From Lama glama (Eukaryota): 64,000 bases of DNA. Positions 12,201 through 63,400 of this stretch are shown here, one piece after another; position 1 is the stretch's first letter; each line of letters begins with the position of its first letter. The stretch is from contig CM052831.1 in NCBI GenBank assembly GCA_028534125.1, positions 23,064,001 to 23,128,000 on the forward strand, written 5' to 3'. The notes beneath the pieces were generated by a model that ran no database searches, had not been told where the DNA came from, and saw only the letters and a list, made by a program, of their open reading frames with translations. Both the position numbers and the translations under genes were made by a program.

Positions 12201-15200
12201 TCTGCCAAGGGCCCTGTTCCTCACAATATAGGTTCCAGACAGTCTACTGGGATCCCACAGAAGGGCCCAGAAGGGGTCACCAACCAGAACAGGGCCCTAG
12301 GCCCCAGCCCAGACTCACAACACCCACATCTCTTGGAGTGGAGCCAGAGCATTGGGACCTTCCACCAGCTCTCTGCTGTGCTCTCAAACCTGAGAACCCA
12401 TGGAGATGTAATCAAGAAGTGAGAGGGTGGGCCTGGGAGTACACATGGGAAGTGAGCCAGAAGGCCTGCGGGGAGCCGGCGCCAGAGAAGACCACGTCTA
12501 GGGACGACAATGGCACTGACGCAGCCAAGGGACCACTGAAATGGGAGAGGAGACATGTCTGCAAAGGGAGAGGGGTGAGCGTGATAGAGACCTCGTAAGA
12601 CTATTTCAGAGCAGAGGAGCCTGAGCTGGGCCAAGAGTGAAGGGAAGATAAAGAAGCTAAAACACAGAGAAGGAAGGAGAGAGTGGCAGCTGTTAAGCAG
12701 ATGTGACATCAGGGAAAGGCGCCGTGGGTTTTTCTTTCACTAATGGGAGAAACTGAATGAACAGGAGGCAAGCACTGAAACACTGAAGATGCAGAAGAAA
12801 CAACGGCAGTTCAGGGTAATTAAGGCTGTTACTACCGAAAGTGCACAATCAACATACTCAACGGTGAAAGACCTTCCCCTCAGAGCGAGAACAAGACAAG
12901 GACGTCTGCTTTCACCACTTCTATTCAACTTGGTATTGGAAGTTCTAACCAGAATTAGGCAAGAAAAAGTAGTAAAAGGGAGGGAGGGAGTAAAATTATC
13001 TGTTTGCAGATGACAAGATCATGTAGAAAACCGTAAAGACTCCACCAAAAAACTGTTAGAATAAAGGAATTCAGAAAATTTGCAGGATACAAAACCAGCA
13101 AATCAACTGTGTTTCTACATACAAGCAATGAACAATCCAAAAAAGAAATTGAGAAAACGATTCTATTTACATTAGTATCAAAAAGAATTAAACAGATGTG
13201 AATTTAACCAAGGAGGCGAAACACTTGTACACTGAAAATTACAAAATGTTGTTCAAAGAAATGCAAAAAGGCACAAACAAGTGGAAAGACATCTCATGTT
13301 CACGGACTAGAAGACTTAATATTGTTTGATGTTAATACTACCCAAAGTAATTTGCAGTTTTAATGCAATTGCTATGAAAATCCCAATGGCTTTTTTTTTT
13401 TTTTTTGCAAAAAGAAAAATTCTATTCTATTCTGTTCTAAAATTCATATCCAATTTATATCTCAAGGGACTCCAAACAGACAAAACAATCTTGAAATAGA
13501 ATAAAATTGCAGATCTTATACTTCCTGATTTCAAAACTTACTGCAAAGCTACAATAAATCAAAACAGTGTGGTACTGGCATAAACACAGACATATAGACC
13601 AATGGAGTAGACAGGCCCCCCCAAACAACCCTCACACACATGGTCAAATGATTTTTGACAATGGTGCCAAGGTCGTTCAATGGAGAAAGGACAGTCTATT
13701 CAATAAAGGGTGCTAGGAAAACTGGATAGCCACAAGCAAAAGAATGGCATTGTACCATACCTCACGTCATATACAAAAATTAACTTGAAATAGATCAAAG
13801 ACAAACTTAAAAACTATAGAACTCTTAGAAGAAAACACAAGGGAAAAGCTTCAGGACCTTGATTTCTTGGATACCACAACAAAAACAAAGGCAAGGAAAG
13901 AAAACAGATAAATGGACTTCATCAAAATTTAAAAATATGCATCAAAATTTTAAAAGTGCATCAAGTGACATAATTAACAGGGTGAAAAGGTGACCCCAAA
14001 AATGGGAGAAAAATATTTGTAAATCATAATCTGATAAGGCATTAATATCCAGAATATATAAATAAAAAAAACCAACCCAATAAAAAAATGGCAAATGGAC
14101 TTGANNNNNNNNNNNNNNNNNNNNNNNNNNNNNNNNNNNNNNNNNNNNNNNNNNNNNNNNNNNNNNNNNNNNNNNNNNNNNNNNNNNNNNNNNNNNNNNN
14201 NNNNNNNNNNNNNNNNNNNNNNNNNNNNNNNNNNNNATTATAAAAAATAAAAATTATAGTACCAGGTGTTGGCAAGGATGGGAAGAAATTAGAAACGTGT
14301 GCCCTACTGTAGGGAATGGTGCAGCCNNNNNNNNNNNNNNNNNNNNNNNNNNNNNNNNNNNNNNNNNNNNNNNNNNNNNNNNNNNNNNNNNNNNNNNNNN
14401 NNNNNNNNNNNNNNNNNNNNNNNNNNNNNNNNNNNNNNNNNNNNNNNNNNNNNNNNNNNNNNNNNNNNNNNNNNNNNNNNNNNNNNNNNNNNNNNNNNNN
14501 NNNNNNNNNNNNNNNNNNNNNNNNNAAAATGGGGTCCATACATACAATGGAATAGTAGCCTTAAAAAGGAATGAAATCCTGACACAGGCTACAATGCAGA
14601 TGAATCATGAGAACATTATGCTAGATGAAATAAGCCAGTGAAAAAGATTCCACTTATAGATGAGGTACCTAGAGTAGTTAGATTCATAGAGACAGAAAGC
14701 AGAATGGTGGTTCTCTTCAGGGACTGAGGTGGGCGGTGGAGGGATGGGGAGGTAGTGGGGAGAAGTTTCAGTCCTGGGAGATGAAGGTTGCATGGCCATG
14801 TGAATATACTTAACACTACTGAACTGTACATTTGAAACAATTTAGACAGTAAATTACATATTGTATTCCACCACAGTTTGAAAAAACAGTTAAAGTGGTA
14901 AATTTTATGTTATGTACATTTTACCACAATTTAAAAGGAAGAAGATCTAGAGATGGGAGGATGAGGTTCCTAAGAAGACGGTGTGGGAGGAGGCAGCAAG
15001 ACTGCCTTGGGAGGTGGACAGGCAGGAAGTCCCGGCAGTGGGGAGGAGAGGAAGTTCCCTGACAGTGACCATCTTGGTGAGGCTGGAGCAAGGTGGTCTG
15101 TGGCAAGAGGGAACAGAGGGGTCAAAGGTGGAGGAGGTCTGTGTTGGGGAGGTGCCACCAGGGGAAAGAGCAAGTAGAGATGGTGAGGGAGAGATGAGGA

Positions 15201-42800: not shown

Positions 42801-45650
42801 CCTGGCCATGTGCAGGTGAGAAGCAATGGGAGGAGCATTCGTGTAGACAGAGGATGCTCTCTAGGTGGTGAGTCTGGGTTGTGCAGAGGCCACCATGCCA
42901 GCACTCTCAGCCTCTGGGCCCTGCCTTGAAAGGATAAGCAGAACTCACACCATCACTGCACCCACGAAAGGAAGTCCACTGAGCGGCCCGTGGGGAGACG
43001 AAGGTGACCCTTCAGCTCTCACCCACCATCCCCTCTTCTTGCTGACCTCCCCCCACCCCACCCCAGCTCACCAGGCACAACTGGCTACACTGCTGATGGG
43101 GGACCAGAGATGGGAACTGCAGGTAGACGATGCGACATTGGTCTGGGCTCAGCCGAGGAGAAGAGACAGCCAGACAGTCATCTGAGAGGAGCTCTGGACG
43201 AGACAAAAACGTGAGCATCACGCAGGCTGTCAGGGCCATTGTGTGTCAGCAAAGCACAGGTAGATGCCAGCACTTACCACACTTCCCCTTGATGAGGTCC
43301 ACATAGTATAGAGCTGACCTGGAACCATCAGAGAGACACTCAGCTTCAAGGCCAGTCTGAGCTACAAGGCACCCTTGCTCTGCCCCTTCGATTGTTCTCA
43401 CCTTCGATTGGTGCAGAAACGGATGCCCAGCCGGAAGGGCTCATGCCACCAGCCGACGAACACCACACCTGTGTCTCCAGGGGCCCAGAATGCCTGTAAA
43501 CAAGACCACAGGGCAGATGTGGATAAGGGGCAGTAGCTCAGGCAGGGCCCTCAGACTCCAGGAGTGATGTGGGCAGAGTCAGCACTAACCTGTCCGGGAG
43601 ACACACTCTCAGGGACCCCCTCAAGCACAGAGATGTTGCCACTCTCGACATCCAGCACGCAGAGCACAGGAGTGCTTTTAGAAACCATGTTTTCTCCCCA
43701 GTCTTCGTAAAACAAGAACTGATCCCCCTGAGAATACAAGACATTCAATGCCCAGCTTGTCTTGCAGGACCCTGCCCTGCCCTGCCCTGCCCTCTAGAAG
43801 CCAGTGCCTCCCTGGTTCTGATAGATGCAGTGTGCGTAGAAAGCAGACCGAGCCCCAGGCTGCCCTGAAGGGCCTTTGTGGACTCGCCACGGCCACAGCA
43901 CCTTAATGGCCTGGTCTGGCTTCTTCAGCCTAGCCATCTCGTCATCGCTGCCACTGATGTCCAAGGCTTTGGTATGAAAGAAGGACTCAGCCTTGGGACG
44001 CTTCTTCTCTGCCACGTATAGTAAGTGTGTCTCCGAATGCGACCAGGACAAGCAGCCAAAGCAGTCTGGGTGCAAGGAGGGCTGATCAGGGGGAGCCCTG
44101 GGTTATGGCTGCCCCTCCTGTCCACCCTGCCTGCTCACCAGCCGGCTGCCTCACCATCTTCATAAACTGGCCCATGTTTCTCCAGCGCCGACAGGTTGAA
44201 GCTCTTGAGCTTCTGGTTCTTCTCCCAGACCTGAGGACATCTGGGAGTGAGGTTGCTGTCCTTTAACAGAGCCTCATCTGTGGGACTGAGCCTGTTTGCC
44301 CACCACCTGGTCCCACGCAGACTTACTTCCAAAAACTGCTTCTCCTCCCCTGTGCCTGGGCCTCCAGCCTTGCGCAGCACAGCTTTCATGCTGCCTGAAG
44401 GAGATTCTCTGCTCAGCAGCCTAAGGAGGATATGGGGTAGCAGGTTAGAATTACCTCCCACCCAGTAATAGCCCATCCTGTCCCCTTACTGGCCACAACC
44501 TCTTTGACAAGATTCTTGAGGCTCTGGCCTACATCCATCCCTGCACCCCTTCTAGCGCCACCATGGCAGCTGCCTTGCATCCCCTCCCTCGAGCAAGGCC
44601 TCTAGACCTGGCCCAAGTTTGGAGCAAGCCTTCAGTGTTTATGACCATGTCACTAGAGACCACCTGAGCTCCCAAGGGGCAGGAACCTGGCTCCCAGCCT
44701 CCCTTCTAGGCCCTACTGACACCAAGGCACATGGTGGGCATTTGTAAAAGGCNNNNNNNNNNNNNNNNNNNNNNNNNNNNNNNNNNNNNNNNNNNNNNNN
44801 NNNNNNNNNNNNNNNNNNNNNNNNNNNNNNNNNNNNNNNNNNNNNNNNNNNNNNNNNNNNNNNNNNNNNNNNNNNNNNNNNNNNAATCGGATGTTCTCCA
44901 TGCGTTCCAGGTCCCTCTGGATCCACTCTGCGAGGAGAGGCACGAGGCTGCTCAACTTGACTAGTCCCAGCACAGGCTGCTCTACCCAACCCCAAGCAGG
45001 CCCAGCCCACCTCCCTCAATCTGTCTTCAGATATTCTGGGGGCAGGATGGGCATCACTTGGCCACAACTCAAGACTAGGCCTGCAGAGCCTGAGCTGACA
45101 ATATCTTGGAGTGTAACCATTACTGCCCCAAGCATCCACTCTAGAACCTTGAGGGTGGATATGGGATAGGATGATGAGGGTGACTCTTACAAGGCCCACA
45201 CTCTGCACCCATTGGCACCATCCCGTAACACCCCAAAGAGCCCCATATACACCTGTGTGCAAGGACCTCTGGGGGATTCACCCTTCCACTCCTACACTCT
45301 AGAAGCCCAGTTTCCTCCACACATCCGTGTGCACTGTCAGGCAGCGAGCCTGCCTTCACACCCTCCTCCTCTCCACTCGAGTGCATGGCCCCGTAAAGAG
45401 CCCGCCACCGATTCCTCTCCATATACACACCAGTGTGCACCGTCCGGTAGTGGCCCCCGTACTGCGTGGTGACCTCCGGGCCCAGGCAGGCGGCGCTCAG
45501 CGCGGAATGGCGGCTAAGGCCCCGGTACAGCGCCGCCGCCTCTTCGGGCTCGCTCAGCAGCACCTGCGCAGGGGACACACGAGGGTCAGGCCCAGCCCGG
45601 GCTGCAACGACCACGGGAACCGCGAGCCGATCCCTCACCTGCCGCTCCAT
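36880..45650 (-). CDS. APEH: Acylamino-acid-releasing enzyme (acylpeptide hydrolase, S9C family), ~732 aa
   Basis: MERQVLLSEP start; GGSHGG nucleophile, GQEDRRV Asp, KSTHTLSE His. Exons 45639-45650, 45431-45563, (~44801, in N gap)-44927, 44327-44420, 44155-44230, 43902-44065, 43590-43727, 43402-43493, 43278-43318, 43072-43193, 42479-42539, 41080-41177, 40387-40438, 39522-39610, 38931-39069, 38391-38474, 38226-38306, 37786-37874, 37486-37676, 37276-37378, 37085-37191, 36880-36985. Confidence 0.97.
40570..40730 (+). mobile_element. MIR SINE
   Basis: CCTGGGTTCACATCCCAGCTCTGTTACAACTTGCTGAATGACCCTG...CTCTGAG. Confidence 0.6.
41560..41725 (-). mobile_element. MIR SINE (antisense)
   Basis: AAAGAAATGGAAGCTT...GTCCAAGGACACACAGCTATTAAGGGGCAGAGCTGAGATTCAGACCAGG. 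Confidence 0.65.
42072..42185 (+). mobile_element. Very short, younger L1 3'-end insertion with TSD
   Basis: ATATGTATAATTGAATCACTTTGCTGTACATCTGAAA...AATAAA...poly(A); TSD AAGAAATATCT at 42061-42071 and 42186-42196. Confidence 0.8.
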
Positions 45651-47360: not shown

Positions 47361-47799
47361 GGGTTACTTTGGTAAGGAGGCTCTCCGGTCTTGGGGAAGA
47401 GCTAAGACCTAGTAGCTCCCCAGAGTTTGGGGGTTGGAGGGCACACAGCAAGGCAGATAGGTGTAGGGCTTGTTGGCAACACCAGGGGGCAGCACCCACT
47501 CACCTCCTTCCCGGGACCAGGCCCCAGAAAGCTGTGCAGCCCGGACACCCACAGGCGGAGGAGACACCGTATCTCAACAGTTCCAGCAGCGAGCTAACTG
47601 CTCCCTCCTGGTCCAAATGTTGGACCTGTCCTGGGGCACTTTGTGGAGGGGCCCATTGTCTTTGGACAGATTGGTGTAAACTCAGCCAGGGCCTTGCCAG
47701 TACTTCTGCCCCTTTGCCTTTTCCCTAACTGTGAAGAGACAGGATTGTCACAGCCTGGGGATTTGTTCCTCTGGCTAAGCCTTCCCGTTTCAGAAACNN

Positions 47800-50700
47800 N
47801 NNNNNNNNNNNNNNNNNNNNNNNNNNNNNNNNNNNNNNNNNNNNNNNNNNNNNNNNNNNNNNNNNNNNNNNNNNNNNNNNNNNNNNNNNNNNNNNNNNNN
47901 NNNNNNNNNNNNNNNNNNNNNNNNNNNNNNNNNNNNNNNNNNNNNNNNNNNNNNNNNNNNNNNNNNNNNNNNNNNNNNNNNNNNNNNNNNNNNNNNNNNN
48001 NNNNNNNNNNNNNNNNNNNNNNNNNNNNNNNNNNNNNNNNNNNNNNNNNNNNNNNNNNNNNNNNNNNNNNNNNNNAGTGAGGGGAAAGCAAAAACAAGAC
48101 ATGGAAGCTAGCAGAGGAAAGGCGTTGGGCAGCCACCACTCTCCAGGGCACTGCACTTAGAGAGAAGGAGCTGATTTGATCCGAGGCCAAATGAGGCAGA
48201 CGTGCGCACACGTGCGCACACACACGCGCGCACACACACACTCACACACTTGTTCACATGCATACACACACAATAGCTCACAATTTCCATGGCTCTCCAG
48301 TGCCACCCCAGTGCACATGGCAGCAGGGCTGCTGCTACCCAGGGAGACAGAAATGATATCTCTGAGGAGTTTCAGTTCATCAGGCCTGTCCCCCTGACCC
48401 TGTTGGAGTCCATGATGATGCGTATTTACAGAATGGGGGTTGGGAGCATGATGGCAGGGGAGGGGCAGACAGGCCAGGACCCTGCTGCCATGGCAAAGGA
48501 TCTGCCTGGAAAACTCCCCACAGGCTCCAGAAGACAGGCCATAGTTGCTGCCACTGCTGCCCTCTCATCATAGGCCCTGAGACCACACTCTCTTCCCAAG
48601 GACTAAGTGGATGGTGGGGAAGGGAGGTGTCACTGTGAAGTGGATACACTGGGCCCTGAAGTGGACAGGGGAGGCAGTGCCCTTGCTCATGACACTGGGG
48701 GTGGGGAGCTGTGGAGAAGGTCTATAGTGCATCCCAGAGACCGCCTTGCCCACGTAGAGATGTGCTCAATGCTCCCCACCAAATCCTAGTCCTTCAGCCT
48801 CTGGCCACAGCAGTATCTACACAAGGGCCAGGACACCTGTGGCCCAGAGGCCTGCTCCAGCCACCTTCACAAGGGGTGATGGGTACAGATGTGTCCTGTG
48901 GGTACACTGCAGGGTAGGGAGTGGCAGATGTCAGAAATTTCAAAATCAGGTTGGCCAGAAAGGAGATTTGCTGGAAAGTCAACATTTGAGGCTGACCTGC
49001 TGTCATCTCCCTGCCTGTTTCCTGCTCCTGGCCTCATCCCTTGGCCTTTTGTGGGAAGGATCACTGCCTTGGTCCCCAACGTATCCAGCCACTAGGCACA
49101 TCTCCATACAGACTGAGCCCTGGGTGGTCCGAGGTGCTGGATGGTGGACTCCCTCAGCCCTTACACAGATGGCCTCATCCAGCCCAAGCCTGATCTCTGG
49201 GATGAGGCAGGTGTCCCATGGGATGGGTGAAGCCCAAATCCCAAAGGACAGGGTCTTGGGCCCAACACGGGGGTTGACAGCCTCCTATCTTATCCACGAC
49301 TACCAGAGGTGGGCCAGAATCCCTCTGAAGGGTGTGTAGATCTTACAGGAAAGCATGAGAAACGTGGACCCCTGAGAACTGCATGGTACAGACCAGAGCA
49401 CTCTGGAGGAAGGCCGGGCCTGGAGAGGTCAGGCAGCTGCCACCTGCTGCCCTCTTGGCTCAGTTGTAGAGAAGCTAATGAGCAATGGGATACTTAGGCT
49501 TCAGAGACGGGGGCTGGAAGGGAGTTTGGGTCTTGGGGACAGATGCAGAGTGTCACAACAGAATCTTCTGTATGTTTTGTTATTGAGAAGCTTCCCAAGA
49601 AACTCAGCTTGAGCCACGGTCTATGTGAACACTCACTCCAGTCCAAGATGATACTGTCAGCTGTCCTCACCACAAATGCCAAAGGTCCAACTCTTCCTGA
49701 ACACTCCCTGACCCTCTGGCCCCAGCCTAGATCTCCTGGATCACAGACCTTTGAGCCTCCCAGCCAGAGAGGAGAGGCAGGGAGCAGGTGCAGTCAGGAG
49801 CTGGGGTCCCAGGACACAGCCAGGCTCTGCCCGTGGCCTGTCTTTCTGACTACAGATGCAGCCCAGCTCTGCCCTTGAGCAGTGCCTCGCTAGGAAGGGG
49901 TGGCCAGATGTCTCTGGCTCAGGGCTTGTGTAAGAGGGGGAAAGACTTACAGATGGAAATCCTACAGCAAACCTTCTGAATGTTCATGCACACACATCCT
50001 GTGCAGGCTCCCACCAGCACGTCTACTCCAGAGACATCTTGGTCAGAGAAACCGGCAAGGTGTGTGGTGCCTTGCACTGCCTGGCCTATGGCCTGGCATG
50101 CTCGGGCAGCAATTTCAGTGGGTCCTCACTAGCTCGTGCAAAAGTCAGCTAGAAGAACTCCTGAAGGAGAGGTTCTGAGACAAAAAGAACTCCAAGCANN
50201 NNNNNNNNNNNNNNNNNNNNNNNNNNNNNNNNNNNNNNNNNNNNNNNNNNNNNNNNNNNNNNNNNNNNNNNNNNNNNNNNNNNNNNNNNNNNNNNNNNNN
50301 NNNNNNNNNNNNNNNNNNNNNNNNNNNNNNNNNNNNNNNNNNNNNNNNNNNNNNAGGGGCAGGGTGGGTGGGGAGGTGAGGGGTTTGATATGAGCATATC
50401 TATCCAGTTTCTCAATTGCAGGTTTGCAATTAACTCCTTATACATAACATGGAATTTATTAAATATTAACAGTTGTCTTTGAGGGTTTATATTTCATTGC
50501 ATAGAACGTTAGAGATGAGACTTGCGGCTGTGCCCAAGATGAAGGGAGGTCCCCAAGGGAAGGGCCTTGGGAAGGACCACCGCCCAGTCCACTGGGTGGA
50601 TGGATGGTGCCACACTCCCCAACGCAGGGCTCTGGGCCCTTCCGTCGGCTGGCAGAAGCCCTAGCCCCTCTGCTCTGAGCACGTCCACTGGTGATGGCTT

Positions 50701-51791
50701 AAGAAGGACTGGAGTTGCACGGTAAACAGAGGCGGGCTGAGGGGCCTCCCTAGACCCTGCCCTGGGGTTGTGCTCTTGGTGGCCTGCTGCCCACTATTGC
50801 TTCTAAGTCAACATTCTCCCTGTGCTGAGCAGGGACAGAGCAGAGAGGAAACCAAACCTTCAGTCACAAGGTGGTGGTGGAGGGGAGAGGCAAGGAGCTG
50901 AGCCGAGAGAGAGAAGAGAGTAAAGNNNNNNNNNNNNNNNNNNNNNNNNNNNNNNNNNNNNNNNNNNNNNNNNNNNNNNNNNNNNNNNNNNNNNNNNNNN
51001 NNNNNNNNNNNNNNNNNNNNNNNNNNNNNNNNNNNNNNNNNNNNNNNNNNNNNNNNNNNNNNNNNGGGATGCTCATGATGACTGGGGGGATGGCTTTGAA
51101 GATGGTGGCGGGTGTGCTAGCACGCGGCCACCCATGGGCTGGGAGAAGCCTCAGCCGGCGTCCACGCTGCTTTTCGGTGCTATGGCCTCTTATTTCAGCG
51201 ATGAGACAGTGTTAGGTCCTAATGTTTTAAAGTTCTCCCGAAACCACGCTAGCCACACAGAAGTCTGCTCCGGTGTCACCCAGAGGGCAGGGTGAGGGGA
51301 GCAGGGCCCTGTGGCCACAGAGGGATCCGGGCCAGCTGGAATGTGAAGGAAACGGAGCCCGGGGCCCCCAGCCCTCAGTCAAAGCCCCTCTCCAAGGCTG
51401 TGGAAAAACTTCTGGCGTTGTGGAGGGAGGGCGACGTCCATCAGAAACAGGCAGCGTGCGCCCAAACTCTGCGTATAACGCATTAGAAGCCTGGCTGGCC
51501 AGGCTGCAGAGAGGCGGCTGTGGAAAGAACAGCAGGACCACCAAATGGCAGGGTTTCCCAAGACGGTTCCTCCCTCCCAGCGATGGCTATGCCTTGAAGG
51601 CGGCCCCCTGAGGAGAGCAGGGTCTCTGAAAAGACACTCCCAGGTGGCCCCAGGCCAGTGGTCCCACTTCTCCAGCAGATGCTTCACCCCGGCAGCTGCT
51701 GTTAGAAAACATCCTGTCCTCAACTGAGGCCCACCTGCCACGTCCCACCTGGTGTGAGTCTTTGGGCCAAGGGTTTGTCAGATTGTAGATG
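47800..51791 (-). other. BSN: BSN terminal 3'UTR exon (5' boundary inferred; distal end probably in or near the 47798-48075 gap)
   Basis: Long polypyrimidine tract + AAG acceptor at 51792-51830 on -; internal AATAAA at 50455-50460; miR-153 8mer (CTATGCAA) at 50497-50504; miR-137 7mer (AGCAATA) at 50795-50801. Confidence 0.6.
48203..48272. repeat. Compound (CA/CG)n microsatellite
   Basis: TGCGCACACGTGCGCACACACACGCGCGCACACACACACTCACACAC...CATACACACACA. Confidence 0.8.
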
Positions 51792-52609
51792 CTTGGAGGA
51801 GGGCAGGAGGGAGGGGGAAGGAAAGAAGGAAAGACAGAAGGATTTTGTCAAGAACTGTGGAAGCTGCTTCCCACTCATGCTCCTCCCAGCTGTTTGCCCC
51901 GTGCTGACGGCCTAGCGCCTCCGCACCTACAGGATCCCACCAGACTGAGGCATGGGGAGATGGGTGCTTAGGCAGGTTTGAGGTCACAAAGAGAAAGTCA
52001 GGAAGAAAGAAGAATCAGGCTGGCCAGGAAGGGCCATTTCTTTAATACATGATGCTTTTTGTTTCTCTTAAAAATGAGGGAGATAGAATTTTGTTTAAAA
52101 TGGCAAGCCCCTCCCAACCCACTTCTGAAATTTCCACAAAAGACACCAGGAGATGGACACTCACAGAAGCAATGACCGCTTGGCCCAATCATCAGCCAAA
52201 TGCCAGAACTCGAGGGAGATTCTTTTAACTACAAAGTTAGTGGTCTCCATGGCCCACACACATCATGTGGCAGGACATGGAACAAAGCCACACCAGGGGT
52301 TCCTTTCCCTCCCCAGTGACACAGCCCTGGCCCTAAACCCAAGGTGGGTCCTGCCATGGACCTGGCCCATGGGCTGCCCCTCCTTCCCCTCCCTTCAACA
52401 CTCTTTCTAATTTCACATCTGTTCCAGGGCGGCTCAGAGGAAACATCTGGCTAAGTGGGAAAGCGGTAGGGAGCCCACTGTCGTGGGGTGAGAGAAGGAA
52501 GAATGCTGGGGTGTTGCACTGTGGTTACTGTAATTAGAATAAATTCTGGGCTCTTTTACCTTTGCCTACAAAGCCCAACCCAGCTGGCTCACGCCCCCTC
52601 TGACTTCAC

Positions 52610-53012
52610 CCCTGACCGTACCTCCCCTCCTCTGTGGCTCTGGCTCTGCTGGCCTTTTGTCTGTCCCTGAGGCCTACCTGTGTCATCAGAGCCTCCGTTG
52701 GTGCTGTTCCCTTCCGTGGGCACCTCCCACAGCAGCCTCTTCTCCTCCCTTGAGCTTTACCTGGTATTGACCACTTTCTTTAGAGTAGACCCTTCCACCA
52801 TAATCCTGCTTCCCTGCCTTCAGAACACTTATTATCTTCAGAAATTACCTTGTAAAGTAATTCTTTTTAACTTATTTGCTCACTGCCTCTCTTAATGGAC
52901 TGTCAGCTTCAGAGGGCAGGGACTTGGTCTTGTTCTCTGCTATATCCCCAGCACTTGGAACAGGGCTCAGCACCCACCTAGAGCCTGACAAACATTTGCT
53001 GAATAAATGGAT
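52610..53012 (+). mobile_element. LINE-2 (L2a/b-like) 3' portion
   Basis: GACTGTCAGCTTCAGAGGGCAGGGACTTGGTCTTGTTCTCTGCTATATCCCCAGCACTTGGAACAGGGC...AAACATTTGCTGAATAAATGGA classic L2 tail. Confidence 0.8.
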
Positions 53013-53933
53013 AGAAAACTGGGCCTTTCCAGCACCCTCACTGGTCCTGCAGAGACAGGTGGCCCTCTTGACACTATACCCAACTCCTTCCCACAAGCAG
53101 GCCTGGCCTGAGCAAGGACCTCTGCTGGCCCCAGCGCTCCCTGGTGATTTGCCTGCTGAATGCTGGGGCCTACCACACACATGCCTGTCCACCATGAGAA
53201 ACACCCAAACCTCCATACTCTTAGTCCTAGAAATGGCAAAGAAGGGGCAGGAGGAGGGCCCCAAGGCTATGGAACGGGAAGATGTGGTACCTGGCTGTGT
53301 GCAGAGCAGTGCCAGTAACCAGGCTCTCCTCCCTGCCATCCTTGATGATGCACCACTTCCTCCTTCACCCACAGAGGCAGGGCCAGGGCCAGAGAAGGCT
53401 CTAGGCAGAGGCTTCTGATCCTGCCTTGGCCACTGCAGCCCAGACAGAGCCATCCTGAGGCTCTTCCACTCTCTCCCTGGGCTGACCTGGTCTGGATCCT
53501 CCTGTCCAAGTGCCTCCCTGTCCTCTTTGTCCCTTTCCTGTCTGCCTCTCCAATCATTCTGCTTTTCTTTCTTGCTGGTCTTGAGTCAATAGTATCTTGA
53601 CTTCACACCAAGGGCTGCTAAGCTCGGCAGGGTTTGGGGGTTCTGGCTTCATTTGAATGTCTGGAGCAAAGCTACTGTACCAGACCTCAGGGATGAGGCT
53701 TTGAATCAGTTCTTGGCATACAGACCCCTAGTTGGGTGTGGTTGGCTTTTTTGGGCCCTTCCCCAAGGTTACTACTGGAGTCACCTCAGCCAGCTGAGTT
53801 GTCTCTGCCTTCCAAGTGGCTGCTGGGCCCATCCCAGCTGCAGGAAGCCCAACAGGCCCCTCCTCGTTGTAGGAACTGGGTGGGTTTGGTCAGCCAGGCC
53901 AGGTCCCACCCCCACCCTGGTCCTGATACTTAC

Positions 53934-54026
53934 TGTTATACGCAGAGTCCAGAGCTGCGCCCAGGCCTCTGACTCCAGAGATTTTTCCACAGCAATAATA
54001 TCATCTCCCTTCATTTCTTCAAGAGC
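53934..54026 (-). other. BSN: BSN 93-nt exon lying wholly after the stop codon
   Basis: CTCCACAG| acceptor at 54027 and ACA|GTAAGT donor at 53933. Confidence 0.75.
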
Positions 54027-54409
54027 CTGTGGAGTATTTACAGTGGAGGGCTGGAAGGAGCTGCATCATAGGGGGCCCCACCTATAACCCAATGTCAACT
54101 CATAGCTATGAGAGCTCTGTGGGGGCTCAGGGTGGTGGAGAAGGACAAGGGATCATTGGCCCTGGCTTCCCTTTGCTAGGGATCTCTATTGAGTTGGCCC
54201 CATAATGGGGCCTCTGTGCACAGTGTCTCTCCTTTTCCTCCTCCTCCTACCACACTCATAGGAAGGACACTGCAGCTCTGGCCACATCATCCGCTATTGA
54301 AGACTACAGTCCTCCCAGAAGACCCTGCAGGGCCCCCACAGGAGCGCCTCATGCCTTTCCCAGGGGGAAACTGGGTATAGGCAGTTCATACTCACCCTGC
54401 AGGGCATGG

Positions 54410-57400
54410 TCACCAGAAGGAGGAGAATTTTTTGCCAAAAGCAGACACAGCTGTGAAATAGAAAAGAGAGAGAAGCAACAGAAAATTGGGCTAGACTCCT
54501 TCCTAATCATGGCCATTTGGCACAGTGAAGCCAAGCTCAGCTGGAGGGGCAGGGACCACCCAGAGAACGACTAGGCAGCAGCAGGTGGGCCCTTGGGCTG
54601 GCCCGTGCCTGGGTGACGGGGCCCGGAACCATTCCCCAGACCTGACCCCTGCCAGAGTAGGGCCCTGGAGCAGCCATGCACCATGGCCCCAGCTGTAGGC
54701 AGTGCATACCTTCCGTCAGCTTGCCGGCCTGCTCTGCTGCCCCACCAGGGAGGATTTTGGAGAGCACGCTCTCCCCGTCGGCTCCTGGCGGGCCGGTAGG
54801 AGCTCCTGGGGTCCCTCCAGGCTTGGCTCCAGCCTTCAGACCTAAGGAGAAAGAAATCATCATGAGGCTGCTTGGCCTGGCTCTTCAGGGTCTGAGCGGG
54901 AGAGCAGTCACGAGGGAATCTGAACACGGGGACCCTGTGAGATGGAGGTTGAGGAGGAGGATAGAGGAATGAAGAAAGAAAGATTAAAAACAAGCAGAAC
55001 AGGGGTGGGAGGAAGCAGAACAAAGGAAGTTGAGGAAGACAAAGGAGAAAGGGAGGAAAGGGCAGAGGAAGATGAGAAGGCAGAGGAGAAGAGGGAAAGG
55101 AAGGAGAGAGTTAAGAGCTCCCCGGTCCCTTCCAGCTTCCCTGCCCAGAGCTGCCTGGGCCCTAAGGCCCCAGTGCTGGTGACTCCACCGGCTCATTCTA
55201 ACCCCAGGCTCATCTCTACTGGCGAGGCCTGCAGCCCACTGGGCATGTTCTCAGGGAGCAGTGAGGGCACGCGGTGCAGGGGGGCTCAGGGTGCCAGTGA
55301 GTGTAGGGAGATGGCAGCCCAGCTACTCTGGGTCATAGGCAAGGGCGCCCAAGGGTAGGCTCACCTGCAGGTCCAGGTCCTGGTAGTGGCTGGGCCTGAG
55401 GAGGCCTCCCCTGCTGCGGTGCTTTGGCAGTCCCTTTAGAGCCGTTTGCCTGCTCTGCCCGTGGCTGCAACACAGAACCAATAGCTGAGCTACCCCCCCG
55501 TCAACTCTGCTCATGCCCAGCCTGGAACCAAGGAGCTGTCCAGCTGCAGTCCCAGCATTCACCCTGGGGAGGGTCCATGTACTGGAGCCCTACTTACCGG
55601 TCCTGCTGGCTGGGGGCCTGTGGCTGTTGAGGGGCCCGGCTGAGGCTTCCCTGTTGGCTGGCTGGCAGCAGGGGCCGGGCCCCGAGCAGCTGGCTGGCCC
55701 TGCTGCTGCAGCCGAGCCTGTGACGGGGCCTGCTGCGGGGGTTGTAGCCCAAGGCCTTGCTGTTGCTGCTGCTGCTGCTGCTGTGTCTGTGGCTGGCGAG
55801 ATGCTGCCGCTGAAGGCGTCTGCCTGGATGGAAGCGGCTGTGACTGCTGTGGCCCTGGAGCTGCCTGCCGACCTTGCGGCTGCGGCTGGGATTCTGGCTT
55901 TGGCTGCAGTGCAGCGGGCCCTGAGTGGGCCTGCCGGGAGCCCTTCTTGCTCTCAGAGGCATGATGGTACGCTGACGGGACTCGGGATGGCTGGGAGTAT
56001 TCAGCGGAGCTAGGGTACCCAGGCTGACCCTTCTTCTGCATGGCCGGGGTGGAGCTGGGCTGAGGGTGAGGCCGGGCCTCGTGGCGACCCAGGTCCCGAA
56101 CGTGTGGTTTGGCAGCACGCCGGCCTGGCTCCTCACCAGCGTGGCGGCCTGAGTGCCGCCCGTGGTCACTGTGGTGCCGGTGTTCCTTGGTTGAGGCATG
56201 GCGGCCCGGGCCACCCTCATCATGTGGCCAAAGGCCCTCCTCGGGGGGCTCANNNNNNNNNNNNNNNNNNNNNNNNNNNNNNNNNNNNNNNNNNNNNNNN
56301 NNNNNNNNNNNNNNNNNNNNNNNNNNNNNNNNNNNNNNNNNNNNNNNNNNNNNNNNNNNNNNNNNNNNNNNNNNNNNNNNNNNNNNNNNNNNNNNNNNNN
56401 NNNNNNNNNNNNNNNNNNNNNNNNNNNNNNNNGGGCTGGCCGCAGGGGGAGGCCCAGCTGAAGCCATGCAAGGAAAACAGAGAGTGGGTGCCACAGCCAC
56501 AAGCTTAACACTAGGCCCCCAGCCCCCACCCCCCACAACTGGGGCCAGGGGGCAGGTGGAGCAGGCAGGAAGGGCACCCTGCAGCAGGGCCCACTGGATG
56601 AGGCACCAGGCCAGGCCCCACTGGGACATCTCAGGGCCCAGGGCCCCTTGGGCAGGCAGGCACCCCACGTACTGAGCATCTGCCAAAATCACCCCCAGCT
56701 GCCATTACCTTCGCTGTCGGAAACTACGCAGTGGGAATCATCCAGGATGTAGCCCTCCTCACGCTTATATGCGTGGGCCCGCGGTCCATCCTTGACATGC
56801 TCCTGGACATCAGGCATGGAGTGGCTGGAGCAGAACTGCGGGCAGGTGTCCCCAGGGGGAAGGGTGCCCCCAGCAGGGCGGGGCCGCCCCAAGGGGCTGA
56901 CAGGGCTCTCCTCTTCGGAGGCCTGGCTCCGCATAGGGGGCCGGGCCCGGCCATGGGCCATGCTCAGAGATGAGGGCTTGGGGCCTGCTTTTTGAAGTCG
57001 CTCCACAGCCTCCCGCTCCCGCTCATATCCCTTGGCCCGGCCACTGAAGTCATGGCTGGACAGCTTCTCCCCACTGTATGCAGAGGCCCCTCGGGACCGG
57101 CTGCTCCCACCACACATGCGGTCATCCTCCTCCACCAGGTCCCGGCTGGACACCCCGTAGTACCTCTGCTGCTCGTACACGTTCTTCTTGAGCCCATAGG
57201 TGATTTCGTCCTGGAACTTCCTGCCCCGAGAGGCCAGGCTGCTGCTGACTGCAGGGGAGGGGTAGGAGGCCAGGTCTGACTCCACATCCTTGGCCTCTTC
57301 GATAGGCGAGAACTTGGAGATCTTTTGCTCCATTCCCTGCTTCCGGTGCTTGCTGCGCTTTGAGGAGATGGCAGCCGGGGCCAGGCTCTTGGAGGGATGC

Positions 57401-60400: not shown

Positions 60401-63400
60401 GCAACTAAAAGCCACAGACAAGGGTAAGTTTATGCTCCAGAAGCCCCTAACTAGGAGAGCAGACAGGTGTGTAAAAAGATTTGCTGAGGGCCAGATAGAG
60501 GTGGGGACAAGACGAGGCAGAGAGCACACTGCAGCCCATTGGGATGGGCTTGGGCTTCCTTTGGGGCTTTGGAAGCCAGGCCAGGGCTGGGGAGTGGGGA
60601 GCAGCCCAGCCAGGTCCATGTTACTGATTTTGTCAGGAAATATCCACAGAAGAGGTATGGAGTAGGAGGGGTCAAGACTCGGGGGCAGAACTGAGGAGGC
60701 CTGAAGAGGGGAGGTGGCAGGGATTGGACTAGATAGGGGCCGTGAAGCGGCATTGCCCAGGAGAGGCTGAAGTTTCTAGCAGGGTCTGAATGGCTGTGGG
60801 GGCCATGTGTGAGTGTGTTTTGCCCAGGGTGTCCTTGCCGAGCTGCAGGTTCCACCAGATGTACATTGAGAAAGGTCCATTCCTTATCTCCTAGCTCTGG
60901 GCCTCTAGAGCTGGAGGAGACTCCATCCCCACCCCAGAAGGAACCCCTCCCTGTGGGGTCCCCAAGGCTAGATAGAGACCCCTGTCCCACCCTGGACCAG
61001 CCCCTGTGCCCATACCTGGCTACCCAGTCCCCCCTGGTGCTGGTAGAGGGAGAACCTCTCTTTNNNNNNNNNNNNNNNNNNNNNNNNNNNNNNNNNNNNN
61101 NNNNNNNNNNNNNNNNNNNNNNNNNNNNNNNNNNNNNNNNNNNNNNNNNNNNNNNNNNNNNNNNNNNNNNNNNNNNNNNNNNNNNNNNNNNNNNNNNNNN
61201 NNNNNNNNNNNNNNNNNNNNNNNNNNNNNNNNNNNNNNNNNNNNNNNNNNNNNNNNNNNNNNNNNNNNNNNNNNNNNNNNNNNNNNNNNNNNNNNNNNNN
61301 NNNNNNNNNNNNNNNNNNNNNNNNNNNNNNNGGCAGGTGGGCCTGGTATCCAATCTCCAAGGGATCTGGCTTCTTTTTTTCGAATCTGCCCAGGGGCCCT
61401 GGGGTGACGATCTGGATGCCAGGCAGGTAGGGGCTGATGGCAGTTGGCCCGACAAGCTGTGGCCCAGCAACACCCTGGGCCTGCCCGTCTGGCTCCGTCT
61501 GGCAGGCCAGGCTCTCCCCACGCCCAGTCTTCTCTGGTGCTGATATGTACCTGACGATCTCCACTTTGGGGTCAGTGGCAGCGGTGATGTGGATGGCTGG
61601 AGAGACTCTGGGCGGCTGGTCAGGCTCCGTCTGCACGGAGCAGTCACTGATGGTCTGGATGCCCACGCTGCTTGTGGCCCTCACGGCAGGGGCGGCAGTG
61701 GATGATGAGGCAGTAGCATCATGCTTGCTGTCGGAGCCTGAGTCTGAGTGGCGGGAAAGACGAGACTTGCGGCGGCGCACCGGCTGCTCCCATTCGGCGC
61801 TGTCCTCGTCATCCGTCTGCACGCTGCAGTCAGCACTCCGCCGTGCCCGGCGCCGCCGCGTCAGGAGGTAGCGGCCCTCCCCATCCTCGTCGTCCGTCTG
61901 CACGCTGCTGTCTGCAATCCTCCTGACCGCAGAGGGTTCAGGCCCCGACTCTGGCTCGCAGGCGTCCCGCAGGCGCGGCATGGAATGCCGCTTCTTCATG
62001 CTGCTGCGGCCTGCCTCCCATTGCTCCTCGGTCTGCAGTGACATGTCCGAGGCAGAGCTGGGGAGACCTCGGTGCAGCATGGGCTCACGAGGCTGCCCAG
62101 GCCCCTCAGGCCCGGCCACGGCAATGAAGGCTGCGTGGGTCAGGGGTGGCCAGTACTGGCCATTCTGAGCCATCTCGGTGGCAGCTGGGGGAGGCCCTCG
62201 GCCAGGTGCCTCACAGGCCACAGGGAAGGGGGCCTTCTGCCGCTGCTTCTGTTCCTCTAGCTGCTGCTGTAGCTGCTGCTGCAGCTGCTGGATCTGCTCT
62301 AGCTGCAGGCGCTGCTGGGCAAGCTGCTCCCGCTGCAGAGCAAACTGAGCCTGACGTTCCTCCTGCTGCTGCTGCAGCACATGGTGCTTGATGGTCTGCA
62401 GCTCCTGCAACTCCCGCTGCACCAGCAGCTGCTCTTCCTCGCGGTGCCTCTGCAGCTCCACACGCTCCCGCTCCAGCTCCTCCTGCAGCCGCAGCTGCCT
62501 CAGCTTTTCCAACTCCACCCGCTCCCGCTCCAGCTGTAGCAGTTGTTCCTGCTGCTTCCGCTGTCTCTCCTCCTGTGACACTTCCTCCTTCTCAAGCCCT
62601 GGCCGGCTGAGGGCCCCACTGCCGCCCCCAGGAGCAGCATCTACTGACGGCTTCTGGCCAGCCAGTGGGGCTGGGGCTGGGGCTGCTACAGCCTCCTTGA
62701 CAGCAGCAGGGGGAGCTGTGGAAAGAGGCTCTTCCCGAGCAGCCCCTGCTGGCAGCTCTGGCCTTGGTGTGCCCCCGGCCCCTGGGGCCTTGACAGCAGC
62801 AGGCTTCCCCAGGTAGACAGGACCTTCAGCAGGTGGAATGCTGGAAGCAGTGGGGAATCTACTTGGTACAGGATATCGGTACAGCCCTGTGGGCCCGAGA
62901 GGTACCCGGGGGGCAATCATGGGCAAGCGTGTCAGGCTGGCGAGTGGCACGGCTGTGACCCCACCAGCTGCATAAGGCCTATACATGCCGCCACGCACCA
63001 TGGGCCGCAGTACTGAGGCAGGCTGGGTGGTGATGGGCAGTGTTGCAGCAATCGGAGTGTTGATAGTCGAATAGATCATGCCATCGGCTGCACGCACAGT
63101 GGCTGTGGATGGTAGTAGCTGTCTGACTGCTGTTCCCTGGCCTGCTGTAGGCCTGTACTGGGCCAGGTTTCCAGGACTGGGGTGGCTCTCTGGGAAGGTG
63201 GGGTTCCCAAGGAGACCAGGTCTGAGGGGAGCCAGACCTTGCGGGGCACTGAGCCCAGGCCTGGGCTGGGGCTGATACTGCATGAGGTCGGGGCCACCAC
63301 CACCGCTGCCATGCCGCCCTCCATACTGGTCCATAGAGTTGAGGGCAGCGCACATGCGGCTGATCTCACGGGCTGTGGTGGCACTGTACTGGGCCAGGCT

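Follow-up and report, generated by a model that had tools for sequence, protein, structure and literature searches.

Why should a short exon lying wholly beyond the stop codon be nearly invariant between mammals, and why should its last 60 nt be complementary to a segment of the next exon, on the far side of the last intron? These questions are raised by the 3′ end of the Bassoon gene (BSN) in a stretch of 64,000 nt of llama DNA (Lama glama, assembly GCA_028534125.1, contig CM052831.1, positions 23,064,001 to 23,128,000; hereafter ‘the window’), the minus strand of which carries the C-terminal exons of BSN, including long open reading frames (ORFs) with a poly-Q tract. Bassoon is a core scaffold of the presynaptic active zone and has been linked to epilepsy and neurodegeneration; we know of nothing on the control of its mRNA, including its sensitivity to nonsense-mediated decay (NMD). 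The normal BSN transcript carries a splice junction in an NMD-triggering position beside a near-invariant exon, and the analysis presented here suggests that a long stem probably forms in the mature mRNA beside this last junction. A conserved stem around the junction would be a concrete and mutable element for the study of how neurons handle introns of the 3′ untranslated region (3′UTR), and would bear on processes such as the loading of the exon junction complex (EJC) where the exon is structured, cross-talk involving Staufen or NMD, and intron detention.

Two complementary arms and their predicted pairing

The complementary segments are the end of a 93-nt 3′UTR exon, exon 11 (arm A), and an 83-nt segment of the last exon (arm B); their coordinates are collected in Table 1. 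The initial annotation, made from the letters of the window, had drawn four collinear helices (a to d) between them, and the two long ones were both recovered where it had placed them, helix a with 14/14 pairs in this genome and helix d with 18/19. At the RNA level, helix a consists of 14 Watson–Crick pairs starting 2 nt inside the exon end, followed by five further pairs, four of which are G·U; at the DNA level, the match at helix d (51397-51418 / 53972-53993) comprises 19/22 positions. The complementarity of the two arms exceeds chance. When exon 11 is aligned in inverted orientation with the 2.7 kb downstream, the chained alignment scores 50.8, compared with 29.4±3.3 for dinucleotide shuffles (maximum 44.4, with 0/1000 reaching 50.8). 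Each block is found exactly twice in the 64-kb window, for an expected number of 0.00-0.03. The absence of any further copy with up to three mismatches agrees with the earlier remark that neither arm looks like a transposon, and within the window nothing assigns the arms to a multi-copy repeat family. Homology past the two blocks was looked for and was not found. Finally, the complementarity is confined to the exon: it ends at donor position -2 and does not reach the intron.

Folding was modelled in two states, the spliced state being represented by two strands (exon 11 as one, 542 or 722 nt of the last exon as the other) and the unspliced state by a contiguous pre-mRNA of 2,777 nt. In thermodynamic folding, each arm is the predicted dominant pairing partner of the other. 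Helices a and d have pair probabilities of about 1 in the two-strand folds (0.99-1.0 for helix a), and the same pairs are present in the minimum free energy (MFE) structure of the unspliced RNA. In the MFE structures, 54 of the 60 bases at the exon end are paired with arm B, in the two-strand fold and in the 2,777-nt pre-mRNA alike, which is in line with the previous estimate of about 50 of 60. Among the weaker helices, helix c is retained as moderate (about 0.65), and helix b, as originally drawn, is not robust (0.17). A third helix, between the 5′ end of exon 11 and 51335-51352, was predicted in the two-strand fold and is lost when more context is given.

It had also been argued that the abundance of G·U wobbles on the transcribed strand points to selection on RNA structure. 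This argument is weak, since the asymmetry between the strands is small (-73.9 kcal/mol for the sense-strand duplex versus -69.8 kcal/mol for the antisense one, a difference of about 4 kcal/mol) and since it suffers from ascertainment bias, the helices having been found by allowing G·U pairs.

Splicing of the 93-nt exon and conservation of the arms

The model of the BSN 3′ end is based on splice motifs and on two cDNA-like ORFs of other mammals (P0123 and P0130). Exon 10, bordered by an AG acceptor and a GTGAGT donor, has a translation that terminates in AVSAFGKKFSSFW followed by the stop codon. The use of exon 11 was checked by a search of a protein collection with the plus-strand ORF that overlaps it, which returned three clusters. 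P0121 and P0122 are genomic read-throughs, in which intron 10 is retained with a divergence of 13-14%. P0123 (JGI, 5 contigs) and P0130 (Logan), a member of its cluster, represent a spliced transcript translated in antisense and map, in order, to 55436-55365, 54847-54710, 54453-54397, 54027-53935 and 51795-51545. Both cross exactly the junctions that the initial annotation had foreseen. The 93-nt segment is thus a used 3′UTR exon, and both introns beyond the stop codon are real; as read from these translations, exon 11 is spliced to its two neighbours in no fewer than two related mammals. Even if these ORFs derive from retrocopies, they would still be a record of spliced mRNA. In the llama, use of the exon is suggested indirectly by the intact consensus splice sites and by the share of RNA-seq words: of the words sampled from 51300-54500, the RNA-seq contig runs contain 23-30%, which is near the 20% to be expected from the exons alone.

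In this model, the last exon junction lies 107 nt past the stop codon, with both junctions borne out by P0123 and P0130. An NMD-sensitising 3′UTR-intron architecture is marked by a junction that lies, in the normal mRNA, more than 50-55 nt past the stop codon, and BSN has such a junction. The geometry first proposed, with arms about 310 nt apart after splicing, needs only to be refined to 313 nt, now that the start of the last exon has been fixed at 51791 and the length of intron 11 at 2,142 nt.

Table 1. Features of the BSN 3′ end and of the two complementary arms, in window coordinates
Feature	Position	Strand	Remarks
BSN exon 10, stop-codon exon	54450-54396	-	55 nt; TGA at 54412-54410, then 14 nt of 3′UTR up to the donor
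Intron 10, first 3′UTR intron	54395-54027	-	369 nt; skipped in P0123/P0130
Exon 11, 93-nt 3′UTR exon	54026-53934	-	Acceptor AG/GCTCTT, donor ACA/GTAAGT; both sides joined in P0123/P0130
Arm A, 3′-terminal 60 nt of exon 11	53934-53993	-	Helix d strand 53975-53993; weak middle 53954-53974; helix a and wobble extension 53935-53953
Intron 11, last intron	53933-51792	-	2,142 nt; splice motifs; skipped in P0123/P0130; looped out in the pre-mRNA duplex model
Last exon of BSN	from 51791	-	Splice motifs and P0123/P0130
First 312 nt of last exon	51791-51480	-	Predicted apical loop after splicing; 313 nt counting base 53934
Arm B	51397-51479	-	83-nt segment; partner of arm A, begins 313 nt into the last exon
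Arm B partner of helix a	51466-51479	-	14/14 complementary to 53935-53948
Arm B middle	51416-51465	-	G·U-rich extension 51461-51465, helices b and c of the initial annotation, 25-nt bulge; variable between species
Arm B partner of helix d	51397-51415	-	19 positions: 17 Watson–Crick, 1 G·U, 1 C·A
Conserved block adjoining arm B on its 3′ side, outside the duplex	51302-51396	-	95 nt; 0.02-0.026 inferred changes per taxon-position; folds locally in models

Conservation was read from contigs of other mammals as represented by their translated ORFs, with both strands and several frames taken into account and with changes deduced by minimal codon change; it is expressed per position in three taxa on the exon side, and per taxon-position in nine taxa with clean alignments on the arm B side. 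Arm A has 0 inferred changes in each of the three taxa, and the antisense peptide VIRRVQSCAQASDSRDFSTA that covers it is the same in the window, in P0121, P0122 and P0123, and in the cluster members P0129 and P0130. The first 33 nt of exon 11 have 1-3 inferred changes, and the introns on either side, which also have indels, 0.13-0.21 changes per position. By this measure, exon 11 is an island of conservation between diverged introns. A scan of metagenome contigs with the exon 11 alignment gave 119 pattern matches and no true relative.

Arm B gives a comparable picture in its two pairing blocks. The partner of helix d is unchanged (0/171 taxon-positions, from two reading frames and either strand), the partner of helix a is invariant at 13/14 positions in the nine taxa, with its sole change at 51472, and over about 12 taxa the pairing blocks are invariant apart from this one base. 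The spacer between the two partners (51416-51465) has 0.106 inferred changes per taxon-position, and the moderately conserved flank upstream of arm B (51480-51535) has 0.131. In the translations, the partner of helix a thus stands out as an island of 14 nt with variable sequence on either side and a match to the exon end, and this is the best single argument for pairing. Both segments are conserved across species, and the initial claim of selection as opposed to a decaying inversion fits the pattern found, in which arm A and both blocks of arm B are invariant and the spacer varies. Four clusters (P0155-P0158) have in common a deletion of about 20 nt at 51433-51452 (B28-B47 in the numbering of arm B), which removes the partner of helix c. 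When arm B was modelled with the substitutions inferred for other taxa, including this deletion, helices a and d stayed at about 0.99. As a side effect, the deletion brings the two arms to nearly equal length in the P0155-P0158 clade.

The variable base of helix a deserves separate description. Base 51472 (B8) is G in the window, where it forms a C-G pair with 53942, and it is A in all 12 other informative sequences (P0124, P0126, P0128, P0135, P0136 and P0152-P0158), where a C·A mismatch results. The window reads LYAEF, NSAYNA and TLRIT across this site, and the others LYTEF, NSVYNA, and TLCIT or KLCV; the arm A codon CGC opposite the base is kept in all taxa seen. According to a strand-consistency dynamic programming comparison, the species of the spliced contig P0123 is close to P0136 (3/55 mismatched codons), which has A at 51472. 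The 14 perfect base pairs announced for helix a are therefore a feature of this genome, and other mammals have 6+7 bp around the C·A mismatch. Elsewhere in arm B, single changes compatible with pairing are B36 C>U in four sequences (G-C to G·U) and B17 G>A in one taxon (G·U to A-U), and pair-breaking changes fall in the weak middle (B27 U>A and B39 A>C, one taxon each).

Two further observations concern the sampled sequences. Arm B keeps CpG dinucleotides in the window at B8, B21, B44, B47 and B63, sites occupied by TpG or CpA in most of the other mammals sampled, and B8 and B63 set the window apart from all other sequences. Either the window represents an outlier lineage, or CpGs have decayed in parallel elsewhere. 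In addition, the P0127 cluster (with P0139-P0151) consists of 14 near-identical ORF variants from many contigs, in which four sites occur in all combinations, a pattern that looks like population polymorphism in an organism that has been sequenced heavily.

Coding readings of the region were considered and rejected. Skipping of the stop-codon exon gives only a product that ends in GKLTEGS and a stop. A 62-codon ORF starting 2 nt past the BSN stop codon (54405-54407 through 51711, minus strand, spliced) is open here and is not conserved as a coding unit: its ATG is GTG in the P0122 species (antisense CRAWSPE to CRARSPE), and in P0135 its frame continues for more than 150 codons, a length other than that in the window. 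A plus-strand ORF over arm B is interrupted by 1-nt and 20-nt indels, and the 20-nt deletion together with the 1-nt indels excludes coding constraint on arm B.

Possible roles of the predicted stem

The explanation that we favour, with a confidence that stops a little short of even, is that of a conserved long-range BSN 3′UTR stem acting in the mature mRNA, likely as a platform of double-stranded RNA (dsRNA) that affects stability or transport. Helix a (14 bp here, 2 nt from the exon end) and helix d (19 positions) would flank a weak and evolutionarily variable internal loop, and in the mature mRNA the stem would close a loop of 313 nt with the last exon junction at its base. Since both arms are wholly exonic and the complementarity stops at the exon edge, we infer that selection bears on the mature mRNA. 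If the stem forms in vivo and acts after splicing, its readers may be dsRNA-binding proteins of the Staufen type, which would set mRNA stability or transport, this being its most likely role; it may also affect the way in which the NMD-competent last junction is read. A shield over the EJC site, as put forward in the initial annotation, is not the best-fitting picture, since the canonical site (about -20 to -27, 53953-53960) is located in the weak and variable middle, outside the strong helices. It also seems improbable that the stem is a conserved device deciding the fate of an NMD-competent junction in a neuronal mRNA that is expressed constitutively. In that case its closure over the 3′-terminal 60 nt of the 5′ exon would restrict the loading or retention of the EJC at this junction, or make it switchable (by helicases, by Staufen, or by ADAR at the A·C mismatch), in such a way that BSN mRNA escapes NMD or is tuned by it.

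Several results weigh against a selected stem in the mature mRNA, and most of them also speak for an ancient inverted duplication without structural function, each copy having been frozen separately and the complementarity being a by-product. We hold such an origin to be unlikely, with constraints of the required kind conceivable in exon splicing enhancers or protein sites, or, for arm B, in the larger conserved block of 3′UTR that contains it. Exon 11 is conserved throughout, as is the 95-nt block beyond arm B, so that, to judge from the translations, part of the conservation has other causes. Among the sampled taxa, 0 compensatory double substitutions were seen; the helices are simply invariant, which is uninformative on pairing. 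The sole variable base of helix a is mismatched in the 12 other sequences with no compensating change in arm A, the middle of arm A is invariant despite a varying partner, and the data behind these statements are translated ORFs, in which silent positions are unseen. Energetically, the duplex reaches -74.5 kcal/mol, compared with -59±10 kcal/mol for the partners of random 60-mers within 4 kb (z=-1.4), and its net gain over self-folding is -15.2, compared with -11.0±3.6 for shuffled exons (z=-1.2). The predicted stability is thus unexceptional for a GC-rich transcript (z about -1.3), and the case for the duplex is consequently made by sequence statistics and conservation rather than by energy. 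However, separate freezing of two copies does not readily account for a helix a partner that forms a 14-nt island with variable flanks and an exact match to the exon end, nor for the lack of homology outside the two blocks, and independent constraints would hardly be expected to keep two separate blocks complementary across about 12 taxa. Should the locus nevertheless prove to be only a frozen inverted duplication, it would be a cautionary case, illustrating that complementarity and conservation without covariation are insufficient to infer structure.

The same pairing could instead act before splicing, a view that we regard as doubtful. The duplex would then loop out the 2.1-kb last intron and speed its removal or, conversely, sequester the 5′ exon end and delay splicing, with a detained intron or regulated inclusion of exon 11 as the outcome; inclusion of this exon moves the last junction from 14 to 107 nt past the stop codon, which would switch NMD sensitivity. 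This geometry of the last junction speaks for a role in the pre-mRNA, as do the pairing of the arms across the intron in the unspliced 2,777-nt MFE structure, the position of helix a next to the donor (arm A spans -2 to -60, and arm B lies 312 nt past the acceptor) and the resemblance of exon 11, as an ultra-conserved island, to known regulatory exons. However, the complementarity is all exonic and halts at the exon edge, so that nothing intronic appears to be selected, and the GTAAGT donor and the long pyrimidine tract look constitutive. It is very improbable that the stem is a site-selective ADAR substrate, edited at the A that stands opposite C at the equivalent of 51472, an A opposite C within a helix being the favoured context for editing, with the G of this genome as a hard-wired ‘edited’ state. 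An A is indeed present in 12/12 other informative sequences, opposite a conserved C and with 6-7 perfect bp on either side, where the window has G; the duplex here has a G paired with C at this place, and the A·C mismatch applies to the other taxa, as deduced from their translations. However, the G/A difference is located in a CpG, and ordinary CpG decay accounts for it, as for four other window-specific CpGs of arm B; the 5′ neighbour, C, is moreover not the preferred one. BSN is also absent from the mammalian set of conserved ADAR targets as given in the main text and two supplements of PMC4053846. In ADAR papers, the letters ‘BSN’ stand for bilateral striatal necrosis.

Related systems and neighbouring features

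Long-range pairings, Staufen-type duplexes and Arc-type 3′UTR introns are known as kinds, and the BSN instance appears to be undescribed: a search of the full-text literature found no description of BSN 3′UTR introns, of their relation to NMD, of a Staufen link or of a duplex. Comparison with Rfam gave sub-threshold chance matches only, with MEG3_2 at 53907-54019 (minus strand) reaching 22 bits against a gathering threshold of 60 (E=0.44).

The stem favoured above resembles the Staufen duplexes of the ARF1 type, in which two distant segments of one 3′UTR form an imperfect stem with helices of about 14-19 bp and a loop of hundreds of nucleotides; such duplexes were reportedly mapped by Sugimoto et al. 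in 2015 by means of STAU1 hiCLIP. Structurally, a Staufen-binding duplex is an intramolecular 3′UTR stem with helices of about 10-19 bp, and the two helices predicted here, one of 14 bp and one of 19 positions, have this character. The predicted BSN stem differs in that arm A is a separate exon, that an exon junction is enclosed, and that its arms are near-invariant, which is not typical of Staufen sites. A second parallel is offered by pairs of conserved complementary regions, which bracket an intron and are separated by under 10 kb within a single gene, as the BSN arms are; these long-range pre-mRNA structures, described by Pervouchine and colleagues and by Kalmykova et al. in 2021, are said to be linked to splicing. 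However, catalogued entries are mostly intronic and both BSN arms are exonic. The position of the last junction, more than 55 nt past the stop codon (107 nt in BSN) in a synaptic gene, is shared with the neuronal mRNAs of the Arc type, which have 3′UTR introns and of which the normal transcript is reportedly an NMD target (Giorgi and co-workers in 2007); unlike BSN, Arc has no described counterpart of the junction-adjacent duplex. Finally, the hairpins formed by exon-complementary sequences at ADAR sites, such as the R/G site of GRIA2, likewise combine a conserved but imperfect stem and an A·C mismatch, which in the case of BSN is found in other mammals. Unlike these hairpins, the BSN duplex has two arms that are both exonic and non-coding and a G-C pair at the site here, and BSN lies outside the target set as presented in the above-mentioned parts of PMC4053846.

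As to the surroundings, APEH exon 1 is located at about 45650, downstream of BSN. Eight runs of N are present in the window (14105-14236, 14327-14525, 44753-44884, 47798-48075, 50199-50354, 50926-51065, 56253-56432 and 61064-61331), which are masked or gap stretches, two of the eight falling within BSN coding exons. Within intron 11, a stretch at about 52790-53020 (minus strand) looks like an old interspersed repeat of the short interspersed nuclear element (SINE) type. A canonical polyadenylation hexamer is found at about 50460 on the minus strand, about 1.35 kb inside the last exon.

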